Positions 32,964-43,378 of a stretch of 64,000 bases of DNA are shown here, in pieces. The position numbers and the translations under genes were made by a program. Every line of letters begins with the position of its first letter. Within the stretch, counting starts at the first letter, position 1. Under the pieces are notes generated by a model. That model saw only the letters and a list, made by a program, of their open reading frames with translations, was not told the DNA's origin and searched no databases. Origin of the DNA: Paramoeba atlantica (Eukaryota > Protista > Discosea); NCBI GenBank assembly GCA_977017575.1, contig CDRNVI010000163.1:1-64000 (forward strand), given 5' to 3'.

Positions 32964-35900
32964 TCATCCAAAATTTTTGTAACAAAACAGCCGCAAAGTC
33001 CCATCTGTTGATGAAGAAAAAACAACTGACATTTTTTGATTCACCCCAACTGCCTGATTAGGAACAGCCAAACTGCTTACATTCCCATCATGCGCATCTT
33101 CTTCGCTCAATAGAGGGTGAGAAAGAGGAGAACGGGTTTCAATCTCCCATCCAATCACATTCCCTGTTGCAGCTGTCCCTCCCCAAATCTCATTGGGTCC
33201 AACCTGAACAAGGCAACTGAGAAAGGCATCTGAAGGGACTTCAACTTGATCAACAAGAACAAGCTGTTGATGATCACCACTATCTATGGATCGGAAGATT
33301 AAGATTTTTTCTCCATCATAAGCCCAGATCTCTGGCCCCTTTTTAGCAGTTTGAGAGGGAAGAGGGAGAAAATCCTCCTCCTCCTTTTCCTCTTCCTGTT
33401 TTTCTCTAATCCCTCCTCTGTTTCCAACCACCCAATTCCCATTCCACACAGAAGTCAGACACCGAATGTAAGAAGAGCCACGATCTTTCTCTTGACACCA
33501 CCCAACACCACCCATCATTTTGTCACTTCCATCTTGGATCTGGATCATACCCACAGCATTACCAACTGCCAGACAGAGAGTACTTTTTCCTTTTGACACC
33601 ATTCCACTCCTGGCAGTGTTCTGAAACCGACCTTCAATCCCTGACTGGTCCAGTTGCAACACTCTCTTTGTCTCAATTCGTGATGTCCGATGCAACCCAT
33701 GTTCATCTTCAACCGTAATAAGAGTGAACTCAACAACTTGAAAAGCATTTGTAAAGCCCCACACACTATGTCCCACTGCTTCCAATCCCAAAAACCCTAA
33801 ACCCTTCTTTGAGCCAGCCTCATCTCTACCATCCTCACCAATGCTGCTGCTATTTTCAGGTTGTTTCACACCAAGACAAAGGAGAGAAAGATCAAATAAC
33901 AGCATTCTGGAAAATTGTTCCAAGGCACTCAACCACTGAGAAAGAGAGGGTGACCCTCTCATGTTCTCTTCAGCTTTGGCAACAGCAAATTTGAAAGTTT
34001 TGTTTTGTTCAGGGCACTGAATTTGAATGGTTGGTCTTGGGGTTGAGAGGAAGGATGTGACAACTGTGTTTTTGTTAATCAAAATAGAATCTTCTTCTGT
34101 TCCAAAATATTGGTGCTTAAAGATACGAAGTCGACCTGTATCAAGACTCACCCACATATCTTCACTCCATAAACTCACTTTCCTCAACCAACCCTTGATG
34201 TTGAAGTGCTCAATTGCATCCTCACAATTCAAAGGTGCATCTTTCCAAACTCGGAGCGTCCCACACATTGAACTTGTCCAAACATGACCCCCAAATGACT
34301 GGTAGACCATTGCTCTGACTTCTTTTTTATGTGTGTCTTTTTCGTTACATAAAATCAGTTTTGGGTTTCCTCCAATTGCCTTCTTCACCTCAATCACACC
34401 GACATACCCATTCCAAAATCCAATCCAAAGCCAATCAAGACCTGCAAAGAGAACCCTCTTCACTTTCCACTTTTCCTTCACAGACATCATTTCTGACAAT
34501 CGCAGCATGGCCACAGAGAGAGAATGGTGAGAATGCCTTGAAGGATGATGAGCATCCGCCGCTGTTACATCAATCTCTTTCCTCAGTTGATCCAAAACCC
34601 CGACCTGATTCAAAACCTTATGGAACAAGGGGGATTCACCTTGAATCATCTCAAATAGAGACTCACAAACTTGGAGGGCAGTTGGACGGCGAGAAGGTTG
34701 ATGATCCCAGCAAGAGTTCATCAAGTCTAGATACTTTTTCAACAGCTCAGGATTGTTTTCATTTTCATGCTCAAGGACAGAGCGAGGAATTGAAGGACGC
34801 CCCTTTTTGCGAATAAATCCTTTCAACACTTCCATCAACTCAACCTCCAAATCAAAAGAGTAGGGATAACGACGCACTAAAATCTCCCATAACATGATTC
34901 CAATTGCGTGAATGTCAATCTTTTCGGTGAATTCTTGCCCCTTCAACACTTCAGGTGCTGCCCAAGTTGCGGTCACACATTCAGTTTTGGAATTTTTTCC
35001 TCCAACAAGAGAAGAAGCACCAACAAGTTTCACAGACCACCCAAAATCACCAACCTTCGCCAATGGCTCTCTCAAGGTCTGTTCAGTTATGGGAAATTGA
35101 ATCAGAGAACGAGTGAGAAAGACATTGGGAGTTTTAAGATCACGGTGAATGATAGGGGGATTCAGAGAATGGAGATAATGAATGCCCAGAGCAATGTCAA
35201 AAGCAATTTTGAGGCGAAGAACCCAAGGGAGGGGAGCATATATTTCGGTGGTCTCACGAATGAGATCTTCAACCTTCTTTGAAGTCTCTTTCAAATTCTC
35301 AAAGACCCGTTTTTCTTCTTCAGAACCCTCAAAGTTTCCTTCATATCCTCTTTCAATCCCAATCTTGAGAGAGTCTCTCAAGGCATTGATTTGCTCCCCA
35401 TGGCTCCCCCCTGCTATACCCAACCATTTGTCAAAGTATTGGTTGAGTTTTTTAAAGGCACCATTACATAAATGAAGAAGAGGAGGAAGGGGTGCAGGAG
35501 CAGGGAAAACACTTGGTTTGACAAAGTGGAGATTCAATTGACTCCGATAACTCCCAACTGATTTGATCACACTGTCAATAAGAACCAAAAGATTTAATCC
35601 CATGAAATTGATTTGCCCATAGAGGTCTCCTCCACCAACTAATTCCATTACCATTGCATGGTTATGATGAAACTCATTGAGTGAACCAGAAAGAGGATGA
35701 GTGATCCCCACTAACCTGACAATATTGGGATGAACAAGCCCTGTCATTGTGTACACTTCCAATAGAAAGTCTTTTTGCAGTCCTTCTTCAGTTGGTGGTT
35801 TCTTCTCATCACTTCCAATCTGGCAAGAGTCTTGAGCCAGTTTTACATGTTTTGGCTCAAGAACTTTTGCTGCATATGCAAAGTGGTCTCTTTCAATCAC

Positions 35901-38900
35901 AGAGGAAAGAGAAGGCGAGGGTGGAGACAAATGTGAAGGTGAAGACGAGGAAGGAGAGGGGGAAGGAGAAGGGGAAAGAGAGGGGGAAGGAGAGATCGAT
36001 TCAGTTGCATTCTCTTTTAAATACTCTAAGATTGGAACAGGAGTATGGTTTCTCTTCCTCTTACCAAGATGCAATGTTTGTCTACAATTTTGACAGAGAA
36101 ATGATTCATCTCCTTTGCATTGATCGCAAAAAAACTTGACTTCTTGTCTTTCACAATACTTGCATAGAGAGGGAACTGAAGGAGGGAGAGAGGGAATTGG
36201 TGGGGATATTGAGGAAGGCAGCTCTGGCTCTGGGAAGGAAAGAGGAGGAGATGGTGAAGATATTGAAGGAGGGGAAGCAAGAGAAGGAGTAGAAGAGGAA
36301 GATAGTTTCCTCTCACCAGAACTTAATTTTTGAAAATTGATTGATGAAGAACACAACAGGACCTTTCCAAAAGACCCTTGGCCAAGTTCTTTCTCAATCT
36401 CTAAATCCTCCCAACTGACAAGAGAAAGAGTAGAAGCTTCTTGAATGAGAAGATCAGGAACAAGATATTGCAATGCAACATTATGACTCTTGTTCTGACA
36501 GAGGGCAGTGACTTTCCTTTGAGCAAGGATTTTGTACAAATAACTAAATTTATATTGACATGGAAAACAACTCATCCCTCCACCTTCTCCATAATATGCC
36601 ACTTCCACATCATAATCCATATGATAAAACTCTTCCAACATATTCTCGAGAGATCTCATCACCTCCTTCATCCACCATCCTGCCACCTCACTTGACACCC
36701 CTTCCAACTTAAGATTCAGTTTGTCTCCTCGTTTTTTTTTCACAAGACAATAACACTCCACTGCTTTTTTTGACAACCCATCTGCTGCAGGATAAATAGC
36801 TACTGCACAACCTTGTTGCCAACACTCAATCACTTCACCAATCTTCATCAACTGCACAATCACCATTGGCATCACAGCAACAGGAACAGAAGCTTGGTTC
36901 TTCATCTTGAAAGTCCGATCCAGGACCACACGATGTTGTCCTCCAATCCGAAACCCAAACTCACTCTCAATTCCGTGATTATGCTGAGGCTCGTTTTCTT
37001 TTAAGAGACAGGGAACAAAGTATTTTCGTTGCTTTTGGTTGGGAGATCGAAGAGGAAACATGATATGAAGTTGCACCAACAGATTAATCATGTCTTCATG
37101 GTATCGCTCGGGAAAATCTTCTTTACGCCAAAGGTGCAAGGTGAGAGTGTCATGGTCAATCACCCCCCCAGAAGACTGAGCAAAGGAGTGTTTGGTTGTG
37201 ATAAGAGTTGCAAGTAGACGAGAGATCCATTGGGGATTCAAAACGACCGCCATTTCAGTAGAAGCAGGACCCTCCTCTTGGGAAGAAGAGAGAGTTAACA
37301 TTCTCCTTGGCCGAACAAGGTAGATGTATCCGAGAGTATCTAAGTCTTCTAAAAATTCCATACATCTTTCTTCATCTTCAAATGCTTTGATACCTTTCTT
37401 GATTCCTTCAGATTGGATCACTTGATGAACCAGAGAAATATTTACGATTGGGCCCTGTTTTAAAGTTTCCAAAGCAACTCGAATCACTTCAAGAGGAGCA
37501 GGTGCATCAAAGGCCACTTCGTCACTCACTTTCAGCAATACATCCCTCAATGCTTCCGCTCCTTCATCCTTTCCTTTTAGGTTAAAGAATGACTTCTTGA
37601 CCCACTGCAGCATCACTGCCTGAGGATAGATCTTCTCTTCGCCATACCGAGCAATCAAGGATCGATGGAGGTGTTTGTGGGCGGCTTCTGCTTCATTGGG
37701 TTTCAACCTGTCCCCATTTGTTGTGATCAAAAGAATCCGAACCCTTTCTGTACGAGATAAAACAGACTCAATCCAGAAATGAAGTTCCCTCAGAGCATCC
37801 TCAGGAGCATCATTTACACGACACACCACAGCATAAATACAAAAATCACGGAGAAACAATTGGTGACTGATTCGATAAATCTTCTGTCCACCAAAATCCC
37901 AAGTTTCAAGAATGGTCCCATCTTTCAACACAACATCCCCTAACTCAACACCGTCAGTCGAAAGAGGGATGTTCTCCATTTGTTGCCCATCATCTCTCAG
38001 TCTTCGAATCGTTGTTGTTTTGCCAACTGCTGGCCCACCCATCACCATCAATCGCAATGCTTTCATCTTCACCATCCCACCTTCCAACTTTGCCTTACAA
38101 TAGTCAATGATATTTTTTGCTGATTCTCCAGCTTTGATCTTATCAAGTTTCCTCCAATTTTCGCTTGTCATAAATTTGATTTGTTTGATTGCTTGAGGAG
38201 ACAAGTATGCAAGGCCAATCGGGAGGCTGGTGACATCTTTCTGGTGAATAACTCTGACATGAGTGAGAAAAGGACCAACTAGTGTCCAATCTATGTTGTC
38301 CAACTTCTCATCATTGATTTCAAGGGAAGGGCTAGCAAGTTCAAGAACTCCCGTTTCAATTGAACTGAAAAGAAGTTGTTTTAAAGAAGAAAAATTTCCT
38401 TCCAATTGGGAGAACATTTGAGGAGAATGGAGATAAGATTCAGCAAACTCTCTTGTTATTCTCCCTGATGAGCGTGTCTTTTTCAAGGAAAGAAATTATC
38501 AGTCAAAAAGAGAAAGTAAGGAGAAAGTGAGGAAAGAGATAAACACACACACACACCTTCGAGGGCATTGACCCAGCTGCCAAAAGTATTGAAACGACTC
38601 GATTTCTCCTTTCGATTTGTTGATCGTTTTGTGGTTTCATCTCCAGAGCACACGCAAGTTCAGTTTGATTACCAAGCTTGTCTTGATCAAGTTTGGCGAA
38701 CTGTGATTTGAGCAAATGTTCTAGAATTTTACTTTGACATCGATATGCTGCGTAGTGTATCATTGACTTTCTCTGAGAAAGGGGGAGGTGAGAAAGAAAA
38801 AGACTAAAAGACTAAAAGAGAAAAGAGAGAAGAAAAAAAAAAACCATGTAATCGAGTTTAACAATGTCAGAATCATATCTTAAGAGAAGGAGAACAATCT

Positions 38901-41900
38901 CGACTCGATCTTCTGATTCTTCCTCAATATCACAAGCAAGATGTGATAAAGTATTTGCGTCCTATCACATCCTCTCCATTAGTAATTACTCCTTTCTTTC
39001 TTCTCTCTCTCTCTTCTCTCTCATCTCTCATCTCTCATCTCTCATCTCTCTTCTCTTCTTATGAAAACAAACAAAAAAATTATTTCTTCTTGATTTTCTC
39101 CTTTTGTTTTCTTATTTTTCTTTTTTTTTCTTTGTCTTTTGTTTTTGAATTGTTGTGTTGGGATGGTATTTTTTCTTTGACAAAAATTTTTCAATTGAAA
39201 ACCTCTGGAGTGAGTACAATGTCCTTCTTCAATTGTGGGTGAGAACGACAAAAAGGATTGTTACCAACACTGTCAATAAAAATTAATAAAAAAAAAAAAG
39301 AATAAAAAAAAAAGAAAAATTCAAAAAAAAAAAAAAGAAAGAGAGAAAAGGAGAGAGGAAAAAAGTGAGAAAGGAAAAAATCTAAATCTAAAAGAAATTT
39401 AATTATTTGAAGAGAAATAAAATCCAAAATAAATATATTTATTTAGAGAGAGAAAGAGAAAGAGAGAGAAATAGAAATAAAACTTGAAAAATATGAAAAA
39501 AAAAATACAAAATACAAAAGATAAAAATTTATCTTCACAAAAAAGAAAGAAGGGAAAAGAAGAAAAGAAGAAGAGAAAGAAGAGAAGAAGAGAAGAAAAA
39601 AGAATGAGAGAAGAGAAAAAAAGAAAAAAGAACAAAAACACAATATTCAGAAATAAAGAGAGAAAACAAAATGAAAGCAAAACTAAAGTGTTTGAAGTGT
39701 TGAATTTGTTGAGAGGTACTTAGCAATCTCTCTCGCTCCTTCATCTCCAATTTTATTGTAACCAAGGCTGTGTGTGTTGGAAAAAGAAAAGGAGAAAAAG
39801 AGAGGAGGAAGAGAAAAGAGAAGAGGGAAAGAAGAGAGAAAGATAAGAAGAAGGAGAGAAGGAAAGAAAGAAGAGAGAAGAGAGAGAAAGAGAAGAAGAA
39901 AGAGAAGAAGAAAGAGAAGAAGAAGAAAAGAGAAGAAAAGAGAGAAAAGAAGGAAAAAGAAGAAAAGAGAAGAAAGTGAGAGAAGAAAAAAGTGAGAAAG
40001 AAAAATAAAAATCCAAAATAAATCTATTTATTTAGAGAGAGAAAGAGAGAGAAATAGAAATAAAACTTGAAAATATGAAAAAAAAATACAAAATACAAAA
40101 ACAAAATACAAAATACAAAATATAAAATATAAAATATAAAAATTTATCTTCACAAAAAAGAAGAAAAGAGAAGAGAAAAAAAGAGAAAAAAAAAGAATGA
40201 AAAAAGAGAAAAAAAGAAAAAAGAACAAAAACACAATATTCAGAAATAAAGAGAGAAAACAAAATGAAAGCAAAACTAAAGTCTTTGAAGTGTTGAATTT
40301 GTTGAGAGGTACTTAGCAATCTCTCTCGCTCCTTCATCTCCAATTTTATTGCCACCAAGGCTGTGTGTGTTGGAAAAAGAAAAGGAGAAAAAGAGAGAAG
40401 GAAGAGAAAAGAGAAGAGGGAAAGAAGAGAGAAAGAGAAGAAGAAAGAGAAGAAGAAAGAGAAAGAGAAGAAAAGAGAGAGAAAAGAAGGAAAAAGAAGA
40501 AAAGAGAAGAAAGTGAGAGAAAGAAAAAAAGTGAGAAAGAAAACTAAAAATCCAAAATAAATATATTTATTTAGAGAGAGAGAAAGAGAAAGAGAGAGAA
40601 ATAGAAATAAAACTTGGAAATACAAAATACAAAATACAAAATACAAAATACAAAATATAAAAATTTATCTTCACAAAAAAAGAAGAAAAGAGAAGAAGAG
40701 AAGAAAAGAAGAGAGAAAAAAAGAATGAGAAAAGAGAAAAAAAGAAAAAAGAGACAAAAACACAATCCAGAAATAAAGAGAGAAAACAAAATGAAAGCAA
40801 AACTTAAGTGTTTGAAGTGTTGAATTTGTTGAGAGGGACTTACCAATCTCTCTCGCTCCTTCATCTCCAATATTATTGCTCTCAAGGCTGTGTGTGTTGG
40901 AAAAAGAAAAGGAGAAAAAGAGAGGAGGAAGAGAAAAGAGAAGAGGGAAAGAAGAGAGAAAGATAAGAAGAAGGAGAGAGGGAAAGAAAGAAGAGAGAAG
41001 AGAGAGAGAGAGAAGAGAAAGAGAAGAAGAAGAAAAGAGAAGAAAAGAGAGAAAAGAAGGAAAAAGAAGAAAAGAGAAGAAAGTGAGAGAAAGAAAAAAA
41101 AGTGAGAAAGAAAAATAAAAATCCAAAATAAATCTATTTATTTAGAGAGAGAGAGAAAGAGAGAAATAGAAATGAAACTTGAAATATGAAAAAAAAAATA
41201 CAAAATACAAAATACAAAATATAAAATATAAAATATAAAATTTATCTTCACAAAAAAAGAAGAGAAGAAAAGAGAAGAAGAGAAGAAAAGAGAGAAAAAA
41301 AGAATGAAAAAAGAGAAAAAAAGAAAAAAGAAAAACACAATATTCAGAAATAAAGAGAGAAAACAAAATGAAAGCAAAACTTAAGTATTTGAAGTGTTGA
41401 ATTTGTTGAGAGGGACTTAGCAATCTCTCTCGCTCCTTCATCTCCAATTTTATTGTTCACAAGGCTGTGTGTTGGAAAAAGAAAAGGAGAAAAAGAGAGG
41501 AGGAAGAGAAAAGAGAAGAGGGAAAGAGGAGAGATAAGAAGAAGGAGAGAGGGAAAGAAAGAAGAGAGATGTGAGAGAGAGAGAGGAGAAGAAGAAAGAG
41601 AAGAACAGAGGAAAAGAGAGAGAAAAGAGAGAAGAAGAGAACAGTTTTTTTTTCTTTTTTTTTTTCTTTTTATTTTTCTTTTCTTTCATAATTTTCTTTC
41701 TTTCTTTCTGTTTTCTTCATTCTTTTGAAAAAACAAAACAAAAAAGATATAGGAGGAGGGGGGGGAGAGGAGAGGGAAAAAAAGAAATGAAAAAAAAAAA
41801 CAAAACTTTAAATAGGTAACACGAGGGGAAGAAACTTTGAGTACTTCCACCAGAGCATGTACATCTTTTTTGTCTAGTGATTTTTTACCAAAAGCAAAAC

Positions 41901-41961
41901 TCCACTCCTCTTTCCCTTTCAACTTATATTTGTCAACAAAACGTTGGACATTCCAATCCAT
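32964..41961 (-). CDS. ROCO family protein: RNI-like LRRs, ankyrin repeats, Roc GTPase, COR, TKL kinase (B-box insert), WD40-like region with PH insert; ~2134 aa
   Basis: Phase-consistent exons 41807-41961, 41381-41464, 40804-40887, 40277-40360, 39684-39767, 39203-39269, 38845-38961, 38557-38772, 32964-38477. Motifs GGPAVGKTT, WDFGGQ, LGQGSFGKV, AAK, HRDLK, DFG, APE. The large 3' exon is certain; the LRR-to-ANK splice at 39203 (donor GTTTTC) is inferred. Confidence 0.85.
39400..41700 (-). repeat. Tandem exon-intron duplication, four ~530-590 bp units, each with one 84-nt LRR exon
   Basis: Exon starts at 39684, 40277, 40804 and 41381; the flanking purine-rich intron sequence is shared among units, and a partial fifth intron copy lies at 39400-39683. 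Confidence 0.93.
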
Positions 41962-42240
41962 CTTGTCAAACCAAACTCTCTCTCTCTCTCTCTTTCTTGA
42001 AAAATTGCCAAAAATTCAAAAGTAGGGACCTTTTTTTTTGGCTGGTTTTTCGTTTATTTCATTTTGGGTTTGACTATCCACAATTCTCTCTCCATTTTCT
42101 CTTCTTTTTTTCTCCTCCTCTTGTCTTCTCTCTTCTCTTTCGCACTTTTTTCAGATCCCAGAAAAAACCTCTTCTCTTCTCTTCTCTTCTCTTCTCTTCT
42201 CTTCTCTTCTCTCCTCTCTGTGTCACAAAAAAATAAGAAG

Positions 42241-43378
42241 ATGGATGAAGAATATCCAAACAAAGAAACAAAGAAACTTTTTGATGGTGTTGAGAATGGA
42301 GATGAAGAAGTTGTCAAAGCTCTTCTTCTTGGAAACAAAAACAAACAATTCAAACTTGATATCAACTTCCAAGACAAACACAAGAAGGTTTTTTTTTTCA
42401 AACCCAATTTCTCTCTCTCTCTTTTTCTTTGTTCTCTCTCTCTCTTGTTTGTTTAAACAACTTTCTTTTTGTTAAAGGATGGAAAGACTGCTCTTCATTA
42501 TGCTGCTGAGAGTGGCTTTGAACAAATTGTGAAAATTCTTGTTGAACATGGATCCAATCTTGATCTTCAAGAGCCAGTTTCATTTTCTTTTTGATGATTT
42601 TCATTTTTATTTCTTTGTTTTTTCTCATTTTTTTTATTTGTTGTTGTAGTAGTTCATTGTTGGGTTGTTTCATGTTGATTGTGAATGGTTGTGTTGTGTG
42701 ATATTTTATTTTGTTTTTATTCTTTTTTAAACAACTTCTTTTTGTTACAGCATGGATGGATCGCTCTTCATTATGCTGCTGAGGAAGGTTCTGAAGAAAT
42801 TGTGAAAATTCTTGTTGAACGTGGATCTAATTGTTCATCTTCAAGATCAAGTTTTGATTTTCCTTTTTTGATTTTGTTTTTGTTCTTTTTTTAACAACTT
42901 TCTTTTTGTTAAAGTCTGGAATGACTGCTCTTCACTTTGCTGCTGAGGAAGGTTTTGAACAAATTGTAAAAATTCTTATTGAACACAGGTCCAACATTAA
43001 TATTCAAAACAAAGTTTTGATTTTCTTTTTCTTTTTTTTTTAAGATTTGTTGTGATGAGTGAGTGGGTGGTGGGAATGAGGGATTGGTGGTGGGGTTTGA
43101 AGTGGTTTTTTTTTGAAACTTTCTTTTTTCTTATTTGTTTTATTGTGTTAGGATGGGAGAACAGTTCTTGATGTTGTAAAAGATCAGAACATTGTTGAAT
43201 TGATCATCCAATTGAAGGTTTTCTTTTATTTTCTCTCTTCTTTTTTGATTTTTTATTTTATTTGTTGAAGTTGAATAATAATTGGGTATGGAAATGAGTG
43301 TATTTTCATTTTGATTTTTTTTCTTGGTTGTAGGGACAAACAATAAAAGCAGCTCGATCAACAAAAAAAGAAAATTAA
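42241..43378 (+). CDS. Small ankyrin-repeat protein, one 33-aa repeat per exon; third exon carries a +1 indel
   Basis: Exons 42241-42387, 42478-42576 (DGKTALHYAAESGFEQIVKILVEHG), 42751-42850 (100 nt), 42915-43013, 43152-43217, 43334-43378; GT..AG phase-0 introns. Confidence 0.75.

Follow-up and report, generated by a model that had tools for sequence, protein, structure and literature searches.

The four tandem LRR exons of a ROCO gene of Paramoeba atlantica, located in the window analyzed here (a stretch of 64,000 nucleotides, positions 1 to 64,000 of contig CDRNVI010000163.1), are probably repeat units of a subtelomeric ROCO sensor domain that is subject to both concerted evolution and diversifying selection on the sensor surface. 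Hypervariability is concentrated in the residues of the predicted concave face, where non-synonymous changes exceed every neutral proxy used, and the same exon module, made up of mosaic units that differ in number between arrays, also heads a second gene family.

Structure of the Cassette Array and the ROCO Gene

The array consists of four cassette exons (E1-E4) of 84 nt each on the minus strand. The initial annotation had placed them within 39684-41464, and its coordinates proved exact, as did its translations and the junctions QILN-LESN, QTLN-LGGN, QRLY-LGYN and QTLY-VGNN. The features of this locus, termed C163, are as follows.

41807..41961, minus strand: exon 1, with the start codon, a 51-residue N-terminal cap and the first partial LRR; phase 1 end (AA + C = Asn), GTTTTG donor; translation checked
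41465..41806, minus strand: intron 0; homology to the cassette introns in the 3' part
41381..41464, minus strand: LRR cassette exon E1 (LVNNK...QIL-N), 84 nt, phase 1-1
40888..41380, minus strand: cassette intron 1, 493 nt; coding strand CT-rich; identity with intron 3 of 96.7% over aligned columns
40804..40887, minus strand: LRR cassette exon E2 (LESNN...QTL-N); family states combined as a mosaic (Gly15, Ser22, ATTGT-type intron)
40361..40803, minus strand: cassette intron 2, 443 nt; nearest to C218 intron 3, which is not its positional partner
40277..40360, minus strand: LRR cassette exon E3 (LGGNK...QRL-Y)
39768..40276, minus strand: cassette intron 3, 509 nt
39684..39767, minus strand: LRR cassette exon E4 (LGYNK...QTL-Y)
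39270..39683, minus strand: intron 4; 5' end as in the cassette introns
39203..39269, minus strand: C-terminal LRR cap exon (VGNNPFCRSHPQLKKDIVLTPE), 67 nt; phase 0 end, GTTTTC donor
38487..39202, minus strand: linker of two ankyrin-like exons and introns, with borders predicted only from local translation; 1.2% divergence from C218
32964..38486, minus strand: large ROCO exon with a 1840-codon ORF; Roc GTPase, COR-A, protein kinase with internal B-box, weak WD40 (Pfam)
1..690, no strand: telomeric (CCCTAAA)n repeat with which the contig begins

The telomere repeat places the array about 40 kb from the chromosome end. Each cassette exon is composed of 1 nt, 27 codons and 2 nt (phase 1-1), encodes a 28-residue LRR, and is preceded by a CAG acceptor and followed by a GTTTTGC donor; splicing of the exons as modelled is predicted. 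A 27-nt core of the exon occurs four times, with no occurrence expected by chance. The introns had been described as co-duplicated and near-identical, which holds for the roughly 40 nt beside each splice site, while the remainder is less uniform, introns 1-3 showing pairwise identities of 88-97% in aligned columns with 44-84 gap columns per pair. The LRR exons and the Roc-COR ORF lie on one strand in compatible phases, and at the level of genomic sequence the block is co-conserved in its entirety in C218 and in L030, a locus of an independent ENA assembly. Exon 1 is present as a single copy in the window's assembly and has homologues in L030 and L037 of the ENA assembly, and homologues of the C-cap exon were found in C218, C216, C235, C197, L030 and L037.

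With a period of 28 residues (consensus LxNNKIGDEGAREIGKSLSTNATLQTL), the cassette exons show the 28-29-residue repeat of LxxLxLxx(N/C)xL followed by a helix that defines ribonuclease-inhibitor (RI)-type LRRs. Exons searched singly against Pfam matched LRR_6 (PF13516) with E-values of 3e-4 and 2e-3, at scores (18.6-21 bits) under the 23.4-bit cut-off, and a PDB search with the LRR exon profile gave designed RI-like LRRs, ribonuclease inhibitor (1dfj) and NOD2 (5irm), with 4r5d among the RI-like matches. In every unit the exon border is the split codon between LQxL and LxxN, and since this border lies inside the beta-strand, the exposed residues of each strand come from two adjacent exons (26 and 28 from one; 2, 3 and 5 from the next).

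In the ORF at 32964-38486, a COR domain (COR-A, E = 4.1e-11, 43.4 bits, cut-off 35.3) directly follows a Roc GTPase (E = 1.7e-10, 41.6 bits, cut-off 27), the arrangement by which ROCO proteins are recognized, and the Pfam search of this ORF found Roc, COR and kinase domains and neither NACHT nor NB-ARC. Among named proteins, those most closely related in the Roc-COR part come from Pelomyxa, Physarum and Dictyostelium. The organism also has more distant ROCO paralogues (54-59% identity) that possess ANK without the LRR cassette module, which was not found in the distant paralogues L031-L033. An exact-protein look-up with the window ROCO ORF and a word search with the exon-1 ORF returned no match.

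The Cassette Family in Two Assemblies

A genome-wide collection of the exon family, as proposed in the initial annotation, yielded 18 copies and one distant copy in the window's genome. Intact exons number 14 in this genome (mean column identity 90%) and 19 together with the five of L030, in addition to one decayed array. The module of exon 1, array and C-cap exon heads ROCO genes as well as a family of unrelated Sel1/two-kinase genes, and all of these lie close to telomeres. Among the ROCO genes it occurs in three versions only (C163, C218 and L030), and Sel1/two-kinase genes number two to three; the family is small and does not form a large repertoire. The gene's 3' end points towards the telomere in all four telomere-anchored loci. 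Complete arrays contain four (C163, as assembled), five (L030) or six (L037) units, so the repeat number is not invariant, and register shifts and exchange between loci, as described below, accompany this variation.

A divergent RI-LRR gene was seen in C189 by direct reading, where a regex scan gave nothing. Searches for contigs continuing the truncated C235 and C218 arrays gave only paralogous units and low-complexity introns. C216 and C235 were considered as tips of the C163 path, a possibility that was dismissed since their ends differ from C163. L030 was likewise considered as an alternative copy of an assembled locus, but its flanks are without a match above 95% in the window's genome and it is therefore not such a copy.

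Variation and Selection at the Predicted Concave Face

The four window exons differ at nine columns, with at least 12 changes, every one in a codon with an altered amino acid. This agrees with the initial claim that all differences change amino acids (9 of 9 columns), with the nuance that the G/T difference at the third position of codon 2, taken by itself, would be silent where the codon specifies Gly or Val. The variable codons are 2, 3, 5, 15, 17, 26 and the split codon 28, and as had also been noted, most of them (five of seven) are x positions of LxxLxLxxNx on the predicted face. Taken alone, the absence of silent changes among 12 is marginal (P about 0.04), and the caution originally voiced about a sample of four exons was therefore justified.

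For the wider family, the six x codons (predicted concave face) among the 28 were fixed beforehand, with the rest taken as framework, and codons were counted on single exons, only the split codon being completed, by adding the base with which the following exon begins. Across the 19 exons, the x codons underwent at least 26 non-synonymous changes and 0-1 synonymous ones, and the framework 12 and 2, respectively. Thus, 26 of 40 changes (65%) fall in 6 of 28 codons (21%; P = 3.7e-9), and the comparison of non-synonymous with synonymous changes gave P = 0.002. The initial annotation had named a dN/dS at or below 1 at these sites in more copies as an outcome that would speak against it; the maximum-likelihood omega for the whole exon was 5.3 with 14 exons (P = 0.004) and 5.4 with 19 (likelihood-ratio test against 1, P = 3.5e-4), values that come from a tiny (28 codons, 19 sequences) and recombining data set, in which tree-based tests can give false positives, and that are inflated because the low dS is partly due to homogenization by concerted evolution (pS of 0.12 in exon 1 versus 0.03 in the LRR exons). 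In an IQ-TREE partition run with 14 exons, the relative rate of the x partition was 17.5 times that of the framework. The omega of the framework, based on few changes, is about 1-2. Pooled pairwise pN at the x codons (14 exons) was 0.307, in excess of every neutral proxy (exon pS 0.028; intron flanks 0.008-0.092), while the whole-exon pN of 0.098 was only about 1- to 1.8-fold the neutral level of 100-nt intron flanks, the clear excess being limited to the x codons. The nearest 40 nt of intron on either side are almost invariant, and both these intron ends and the synonymous sites may be held constant by homogenization or by splicing constraints. Subject to the influence of recombination and of homogenized synonymous sites, the cassette exons show a signature of positive selection on the residues of the predicted concave face.

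Codons 2-3 carry their changes in one contiguous 5-nt patch, with 12 distinct hexamers among the 19 exons, and identical hexamers (GY, GG, WN) recur across arrays; part of the diversity is therefore shuffled old variation or the product of multi-nucleotide events, and not of independent point substitutions. The four-gamete test found all four haplotypes for three character pairs, and intron affinities likewise cross array borders, C218 intron 1 being most similar to the introns of C235, and C163 intron 2 most similar to intron 3 of C218, similarities that reflect register shifts and exchange between loci. Some character states, in turn, are common within one array. The family thus combines one LRR per symmetric exon with exon shuffling, and high internal repeat identity and concerted evolution with hypervariable surface positions.

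Proposed Evolution of the Array and Alternative Explanations

In the gene as we reconstruct it, an N-cap exon, four RI-type LRR exons, a C-cap exon and ankyrin exons would precede a Roc-COR-kinase(B-box)-WD40 body, and the unit of change would be the symmetric 84-nt exon with its homologous CT-rich intron. Unequal crossover together with gene conversion, acting both inside arrays and between those of different chromosome ends, would homogenize framework, synonymous sites and intron ends, and the same exchange would alter the number and order of units, while selection would keep or drive the diversity of concave-face residues. The predicted LRR surface may bind variable ligands and signal via the GTPase and the kinase, which would make the protein a candidate intracellular surveillance receptor.

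Purifying selection and concerted evolution could suffice if the units held old repeat-specific residues for one fixed partner and the non-synonymous excess were an artefact of their retention. Such an explanation, which we consider unlikely, would accommodate the synonymous sites and intron ends homogenized relative to exon 1, the identical codon 2-3 hexamers in several arrays and the first unit, in which C163 and C218 hardly differ. However, the surface residues of positional partners in these two loci differ in four of four units (19.5 non-synonymous versus 0.5 synonymous differences over the LRR exons), although their ROCO bodies are only 1.7% diverged (dS 0.037, dN 0.011, dN/dS 0.31); L030 adds five units with five further surface combinations, unit number and order vary between versions, and the codon 2-3 hexamers come in 12 forms. 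Relaxed constraint, with duplicated exons drifting and silent changes lacking by chance, was already disfavoured and is highly improbable. The marginal P value of the four window exons, the framework omega and a frameshift in the ROCO ORF of L030 are compatible with decay, but all 19 intact exons keep length, frame and splice sites, and their changes are concentrated in the x codons. Moreover, the truly decayed array (C197/L037) has frameshifts, about threefold more framework changes per exon and losses of the conserved D8, G7 and A11, all three of which the intact exons retain.

Programmed or templated diversification, in which orphan and decayed cassettes (C180, C197) would donate short patches to expressed arrays or mitotic recombination at chromosome ends would create cell-to-cell variation, appears very doubtful to us. 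Three telomere-anchored contigs that end inside an array, the single assembled exon 1, an intact orphan unit amid retroelements, mosaic units, introns common to different loci and a version in the second assembly that is absent from the window's assembly could all be explained in this way. Assembly breaks at repeats, however, have mundane causes, and the C197 array is spanned by the other assembly at 99.98% identity, a result that favours stability of the arrays. A collapsed or chimeric tandem array, an artefact that the initial annotation had kept in mind, is the explanation to which we give almost no credence. Paralogous arrays do break three contigs, and of the words sampled from the region the sequencing runs X1-X4 contain only 38-56%; but the C163 array lies within a long contig and is flanked by unique sequence at either end, the introns of its units are of unequal length (consecutive units start 593, 527 and 577 nt apart), the differences are codon-specific substitutions and not homopolymer errors, and the same architecture recurs in the independent assembly. 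As a more speculative and quite improbable reading, the arrays could be recombination junctions at chromosome ends, with the hypervariable module exchanged between ROCO kinase and Sel1/two-kinase bodies and also between telomeres, perhaps still in culture, so that the receptor set of a clone would change. The shared 3'-to-telomere orientation, the contig ends within arrays, the lone exon 1 and the version confined to the second assembly would fit this reading.

If concerted evolution combined with diversifying selection on the sensor surface is indeed the explanation, a cassette design with a constant scaffold and a hypervariable face would have originated independently in an amoebozoan-like protist, where it uses an RI-type LRR exon module, as vertebrate NLRs do, and ROCO kinases (the LRRK2 family) would be tied to a role in recognition. 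One sensor module would front two unrelated signalling bodies, in a system residing in subtelomeres, where exchange is easy.

Comparison with Known Systems

Brown-algal ROCOs, fungal NLRs and lamprey VLRs are known to follow a design of constant scaffold, hypervariable face and shuffled cassettes. The pattern in Paramoeba is already known in kind from candidate immune receptors of brown algae and fungi. The window gene shares the Roc-COR-kinase-WD40 core, LRRs and ankyrin repeats with LRRK2 and the Dictyostelium ROCO kinases. In LRRK2, ANK precedes LRR and the LRRs are typical repeats of 22-24 residues, whereas in Paramoeba an RI-type LRR module lies upstream of ANK.

The LRR-ROCO genes of the brown algae Ectocarpus and Saccharina encode simple LRR-Roc-COR proteins, in dozens of genes with up to 49 LRRs, and their plant-like LRR exons of 72 nt and 24 residues (GxxPxxL...LxxLxLxxNxL) are in phase 2 (PMC3341825; PMC11378527). 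Common to both systems are symmetric single-LRR exons before Roc-COR, exon duplication and shuffling, positive selection on the concave face, scattered orphan or inactivated LRR exons and pseudogenes within the family (PMC3341825; PMC11378527). In contrast, the Paramoeba exons are not of the 72-nt type but measure 84 nt, encode 28-residue RI-type repeats in phase 1 and occur in arrays of 4-6 units. They are, moreover, part of an LRR-ANK-Roc-COR-kinase(B-box)-WD40 order, with three subtelomeric versions in place of a large clustered repertoire of simple LRR-Roc-COR genes, and the module is also found on a non-ROCO family. Fungal NLRs whose internal repeats are highly conserved (WD40, ANK, TPR; NWD/HET) resemble the Paramoeba arrays in their near-identical repeats, concerted evolution within and between members, differences in repeat number and positive selection at few binding-surface positions, but are without LRRs and without an intron per repeat, and their core is NACHT or NB-ARC instead of the Roc-COR-kinase that Pfam identifies in the window gene (PMC4986451). 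The LRR exons of vertebrate NLR/RNH1 genes contain one or two repeats, preserve the frame and show length peaks at 81-87 and 168-174 bp (PMC6642158). They share with the Paramoeba exons the RI-class LRR, the fixed border within the beta-strand and, in principle, the possibility of exon skipping, yet they are not near-identical, are not reported to be hypervariable at the face and accompany a NACHT core (PMC6642158). The parallel to Ectocarpus drawn in the initial annotation therefore holds as a convergent analogy: the Paramoeba cassettes are not homologous to the brown-algal ones, and represent a convergent analogue of both the brown-algal LRR-ROCOs and the fungal NLR repeats that is a member of neither.

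Predicted gene structure of the LRR cassettes

The coordinates initially annotated for the four 84-nt LRR cassette exons (E1-E4) in the 5' part of the ROCO gene were exact for all four, and the predicted exons of this gene are arranged in the window as follows.

Predicted exons of the ROCO gene
41807-41961, minus strand: exon 1, start codon and N-terminal cap (155 nt, upstream of E1)
41381-41464, minus strand: LRR exon E1 (84 nt, CAG acceptor, GTTTTGC donor)
40804-40887, minus strand: LRR exon E2 (84 nt, CAG acceptor, GTTTTGC donor)
40277-40360, minus strand: LRR exon E3 (84 nt, CAG acceptor, GTTTTGC donor)
39684-39767, minus strand: LRR exon E4 (84 nt, CAG acceptor, GTTTTGC donor)
39203-39269, minus strand: C-terminal LRR cap (C-cap) exon (67 nt, downstream of E4)
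3' of the C-cap exon, minus strand: two ankyrin-like exons, between the C-cap and the large ROCO exon
32964-38486, minus strand: large ROCO exon (1840 codons, last in the gene) with Roc, COR-A, a kinase with a B-box inside and a weak WD40 match

In each of E1-E4, 27 codons are preceded by 1 nt and followed by 2 nt, which gives phase 1 at both borders; each exon encodes a single 28-residue repeat with the consensus LxNNKIGDEGAREIGKSLSTNATLQTL. When the exons were searched one by one, single cassettes matched Pfam LRR_6, with scores below its cut-off, and among solved structures the exon profile matched designed ribonuclease inhibitor (RI)-like LRR proteins, ribonuclease inhibitor and NOD2, which places the repeats in the RI class of LRR. 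The predicted exon chain, running from exon 1 through E1-E4, the C-cap and the ankyrin-like exons to the ROCO exon, is in frame. Pelomyxa, Physarum and Dictyostelium supply the nearest named relatives of the Roc-COR part, which points to a probably amoebozoan organism. The intron stretch at 39014-39051 is rich in (TC)n. About 100 nt before the start codon of the ROCO gene, an oppositely directed ORF on the plus strand (42064-42456) opens an ankyrin-like gene, and a promoter region may be common to both genes. At 40838-40844 (minus strand) the Gly15 variant makes a perfect internal 5' splice-site motif, G/GTAAGT. All Gly15-type exons (13 of 19 intact exons) have this motif at the corresponding position, and its use would shift the frame.

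Cassette family and repeat number

DNA and profile searches of the genome assembly (45.7 Mb, 248 contigs) found 18 cassette copies and one distant relative.

Cassette loci by contig
C163 (window): 4 copies, ROCO gene
C218: 4 copies, paralogous ROCO gene; contig ends in array
C216: 2 copies, in front of Sel1-repeat gene family
C235: 3 copies, in front of Sel1-repeat gene family
C197: 4-5 copies, decayed; two frameshifted exons, retroelement in gene
C180: 1 intact orphan unit, among retroelements

The orphan unit (C180:37052-37135; L027:4953-5036) is open over its 84 nt, keeps both of its splice sites as well as flanking intron sequence, and is surrounded by retroelement ORFs, neither an exon 1 nor a C-cap being close to it. 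The independent ENA assembly ERZ24900291 added two loci. L037 matches C197 at 99.98% identity along 10 kb, reaches further and contains an exon-1 homologue, six units (each an LRR exon with its intron) and a C-cap. C197 lacks the region upstream of this exon-1 homologue, including an EF-hand gene, and the homologue itself (L037:6895-7052), belonging to a decayed Sel1-repeat locus, is also frameshifted. L030, with 94.7% identity across the gene body, represents a third version of the ROCO gene and has exon 1, five units and a C-cap; its flanks were not found in GCA_977017575.1. The one frameshift about 450 codons into its large exon (L030:9900-10000) means either that this version is truly a pseudogene or that the assembly is wrong there. 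Thus, the arrays seen in full from exon 1 to the C-cap (C163, L030 and L037) contain 4, 5 and 6 units as assembled, respectively, and the repeat number, whose invariance would have spoken against the initial proposal, differs among complete arrays.

The Sel1-repeat family possesses homologues of exon 1, of the array and of the C-cap, and the N-terminal module as a whole has thus come to stand before two unrelated gene bodies. Three ROCO paralogues (L031, L032 and L033) that share 54-59% identity with the ROCO gene of the window are preceded by ankyrin exons but lack the LRR cassette; frameshifts or introns may be the reason why several of them appear as two gene calls. One repeat per exon is also seen in a far more divergent gene with RI-type LRRs (L034; C189:74993-75073 and neighbours), so that this exon design is a general feature of the genome, not one peculiar to the hypervariable family.

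The (CCCTAAA)n telomere repeat occupying about 690 nt at the contig start (window 1-690) places the window array about 40 kb from the telomere. The repeat is also present at the C218 start (L035, C218:1-400), the C235 end (L028) and the C216 end (L029), and the four cassette loci lie 11-41 kb from the telomere with the gene 3' end pointing towards it. The contigs C218, C216 and C235 all break off within the array, and this genome assembly contains a single exon 1.

Test for selection on the predicted concave face

E1-E4 differ in 9 columns by at least 12 changes, located in codons 2, 3, 5, 15, 17 and 26 and split codon 28. The initial annotation had reported no silent change, and indeed all 9 columns sit in codons with a differing amino acid, the third base of codon 2 being silent if taken alone. 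With about 24% synonymous sites, 0 of 12 silent changes corresponds to P of about 0.04, which by itself is suggestive only. For the larger sets the six predicted exposed (x) codons (residues 25, 26, 28, 2, 3 and 5) were fixed before counting from the RI-class consensus LxxLxLxxNx.

Non-synonymous (N) and synonymous (S) changes in intact exons (14 from this genome; 19 in all)
Minimum changes, six x codons: 14 exons, 18 N and 1 S; 19 exons, 26 N and 0-1 S
Minimum changes, 22 framework codons: 14 exons, 6 N and 2 S; 19 exons, 12 N and 2 S
Whole-exon ML omega (GY+F1X4; tree-based, recombination ignored): 14 exons, 5.3; 19 exons, 5.4
Likelihood-ratio test against omega = 1: 14 exons, 2dlnL 8.4, P = 0.004; 19 exons, 2dlnL 12.8, P = 3.5e-4

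Both initial expectations, a dN/dS above 1 and a concentration of changes on the predicted binding face, persisted with 19 exons: whole-exon omega was 5.4 (P = 3.5e-4), and 26 of 40 changes fell in 6 of 28 codons (P = 3.7e-9), with P = 0.002 for N versus S overall. Among the 14 exons, x codons evolved at 17.5 times the framework rate (edge-proportional partition), and pooled pairwise values were 0.307 for pN(x), 0.034 for pN(framework) and 0.028 for pS(all). The nearest 40 intron nt on each side showed 4 changes in 78 sites, and intron-flank divergence was 0.008-0.016 over 40 nt and 0.055-0.092 over 100 nt.

Because units are homogenized across loci and dS is low, omega is inflated, but divergence at the x codons is still three to six times even that of the 100-nt intron flanks. 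Some of the differences within the contiguous 5-nt variable patch could stem from multi-nucleotide events. As a control, the ROCO body of C163 versus C218 gave dS 0.037, dN 0.011 and omega 0.31, compared to 19.5 N versus 0.5 S differences in positional pairs of LRR exons. The decayed array, a yardstick for relaxation, contains frameshifts, has lost the conserved Asp8, Gly7 and Ala11, and carries about 3 times as many framework changes in each exon.

Concerted evolution and shuffling

Units of one array have framework and intron characters in common: the split codon reads Ile throughout C235 and His in the three inner units of C218, and Tyr17 and Tyr28 are confined to E3 and E4 of C163. For each of three pairs of biallelic characters separated by 20-60 nt, all four haplotypes are present. 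Cassette introns are of two types, long (443-534 nt) and short (227-300 nt). C218 intron 1 is nearest to C235 introns (2-3.5% mismatch versus 16% to its C163 positional partner), C163 intron 2 most resembles intron 3 of C218, and the divergence between introns 1 and 3 of C163 is 3.3%. Between C163 and C218 the array region differs by 6-10% and the remaining gene by 1.2-1.7%; exon 1 of C163 versus L030 has pS 0.12 and pN 0.11, compared to an LRR-exon pS of about 0.03. Together, the array-shared states, mosaic haplotypes, cross-locus introns and low LRR-exon pS indicate that units are homogenized across loci. Of the co-duplicated, near-identical introns initially described, homology was upheld (88-97% identity over aligned columns), whereas near-identity ends about 40 nt from each splice site, with many indels in CT-rich tracts. 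The codon 2-3 hexamers comprise 12 distinct forms among 19 exons, and since GY, GG and WN each recur three times in different arrays, part of the diversity is shuffled standing variation. The CT-rich cassette intron also has matches of 70-77% identity in closely spaced groups at many other loci (C144, C184, C141, C149, C177, C182 and others), which may be introns of ankyrin cassette arrays or merely shared low complexity.

Proposed mechanism and comparison with known systems

The exon border lies inside the beta-strand, and consequently the exposed residues of each strand are supplied by two exons. Duplication, deletion or exchange of a unit would create a new junction strand with the frame kept; unequal crossover and gene conversion would homogenize the scaffold, while selection would keep the sensor-surface residues diverse, and the putative sensor would feed the Roc-COR-kinase signalling body. 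We consider it fairly probable that the array is such a selection-diversified sensor surface on a crossover- and conversion-homogenized scaffold, feeding a Roc-COR-kinase body. What is generally known of the concave face of LRRs, together with the precedents in brown algae and fungi, suggests a putative role of the LRR face in ligand binding and surveillance.

Brown-algal LRR-ROCOs are simple LRR-Roc-COR proteins of large families with 72-nt, 24-residue, phase-2 exons (PMC3341825, PMC11378527); they have their logic in common with the P. atlantica array but differ in exon type, protein layout and family size, and thus the Ectocarpus-like parallel drawn initially holds as convergence. Fungal NLRs, whose internal repeats are highly conserved, evolve in concert and show positive selection at positions on the surface (PMC4986451), are alike in these three respects, but they are without LRRs and have a NACHT or NB-ARC core (PMC4986451), and are therefore unlike in repeat type and core. 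Human NLRs have LRR exons of RI type that preserve the frame and whose border always falls at one position within the beta-strand (PMC6642158), features that they have in common with the P. atlantica exons. The P. atlantica array is a convergent case and not a member of the brown-algal, fungal or human families.
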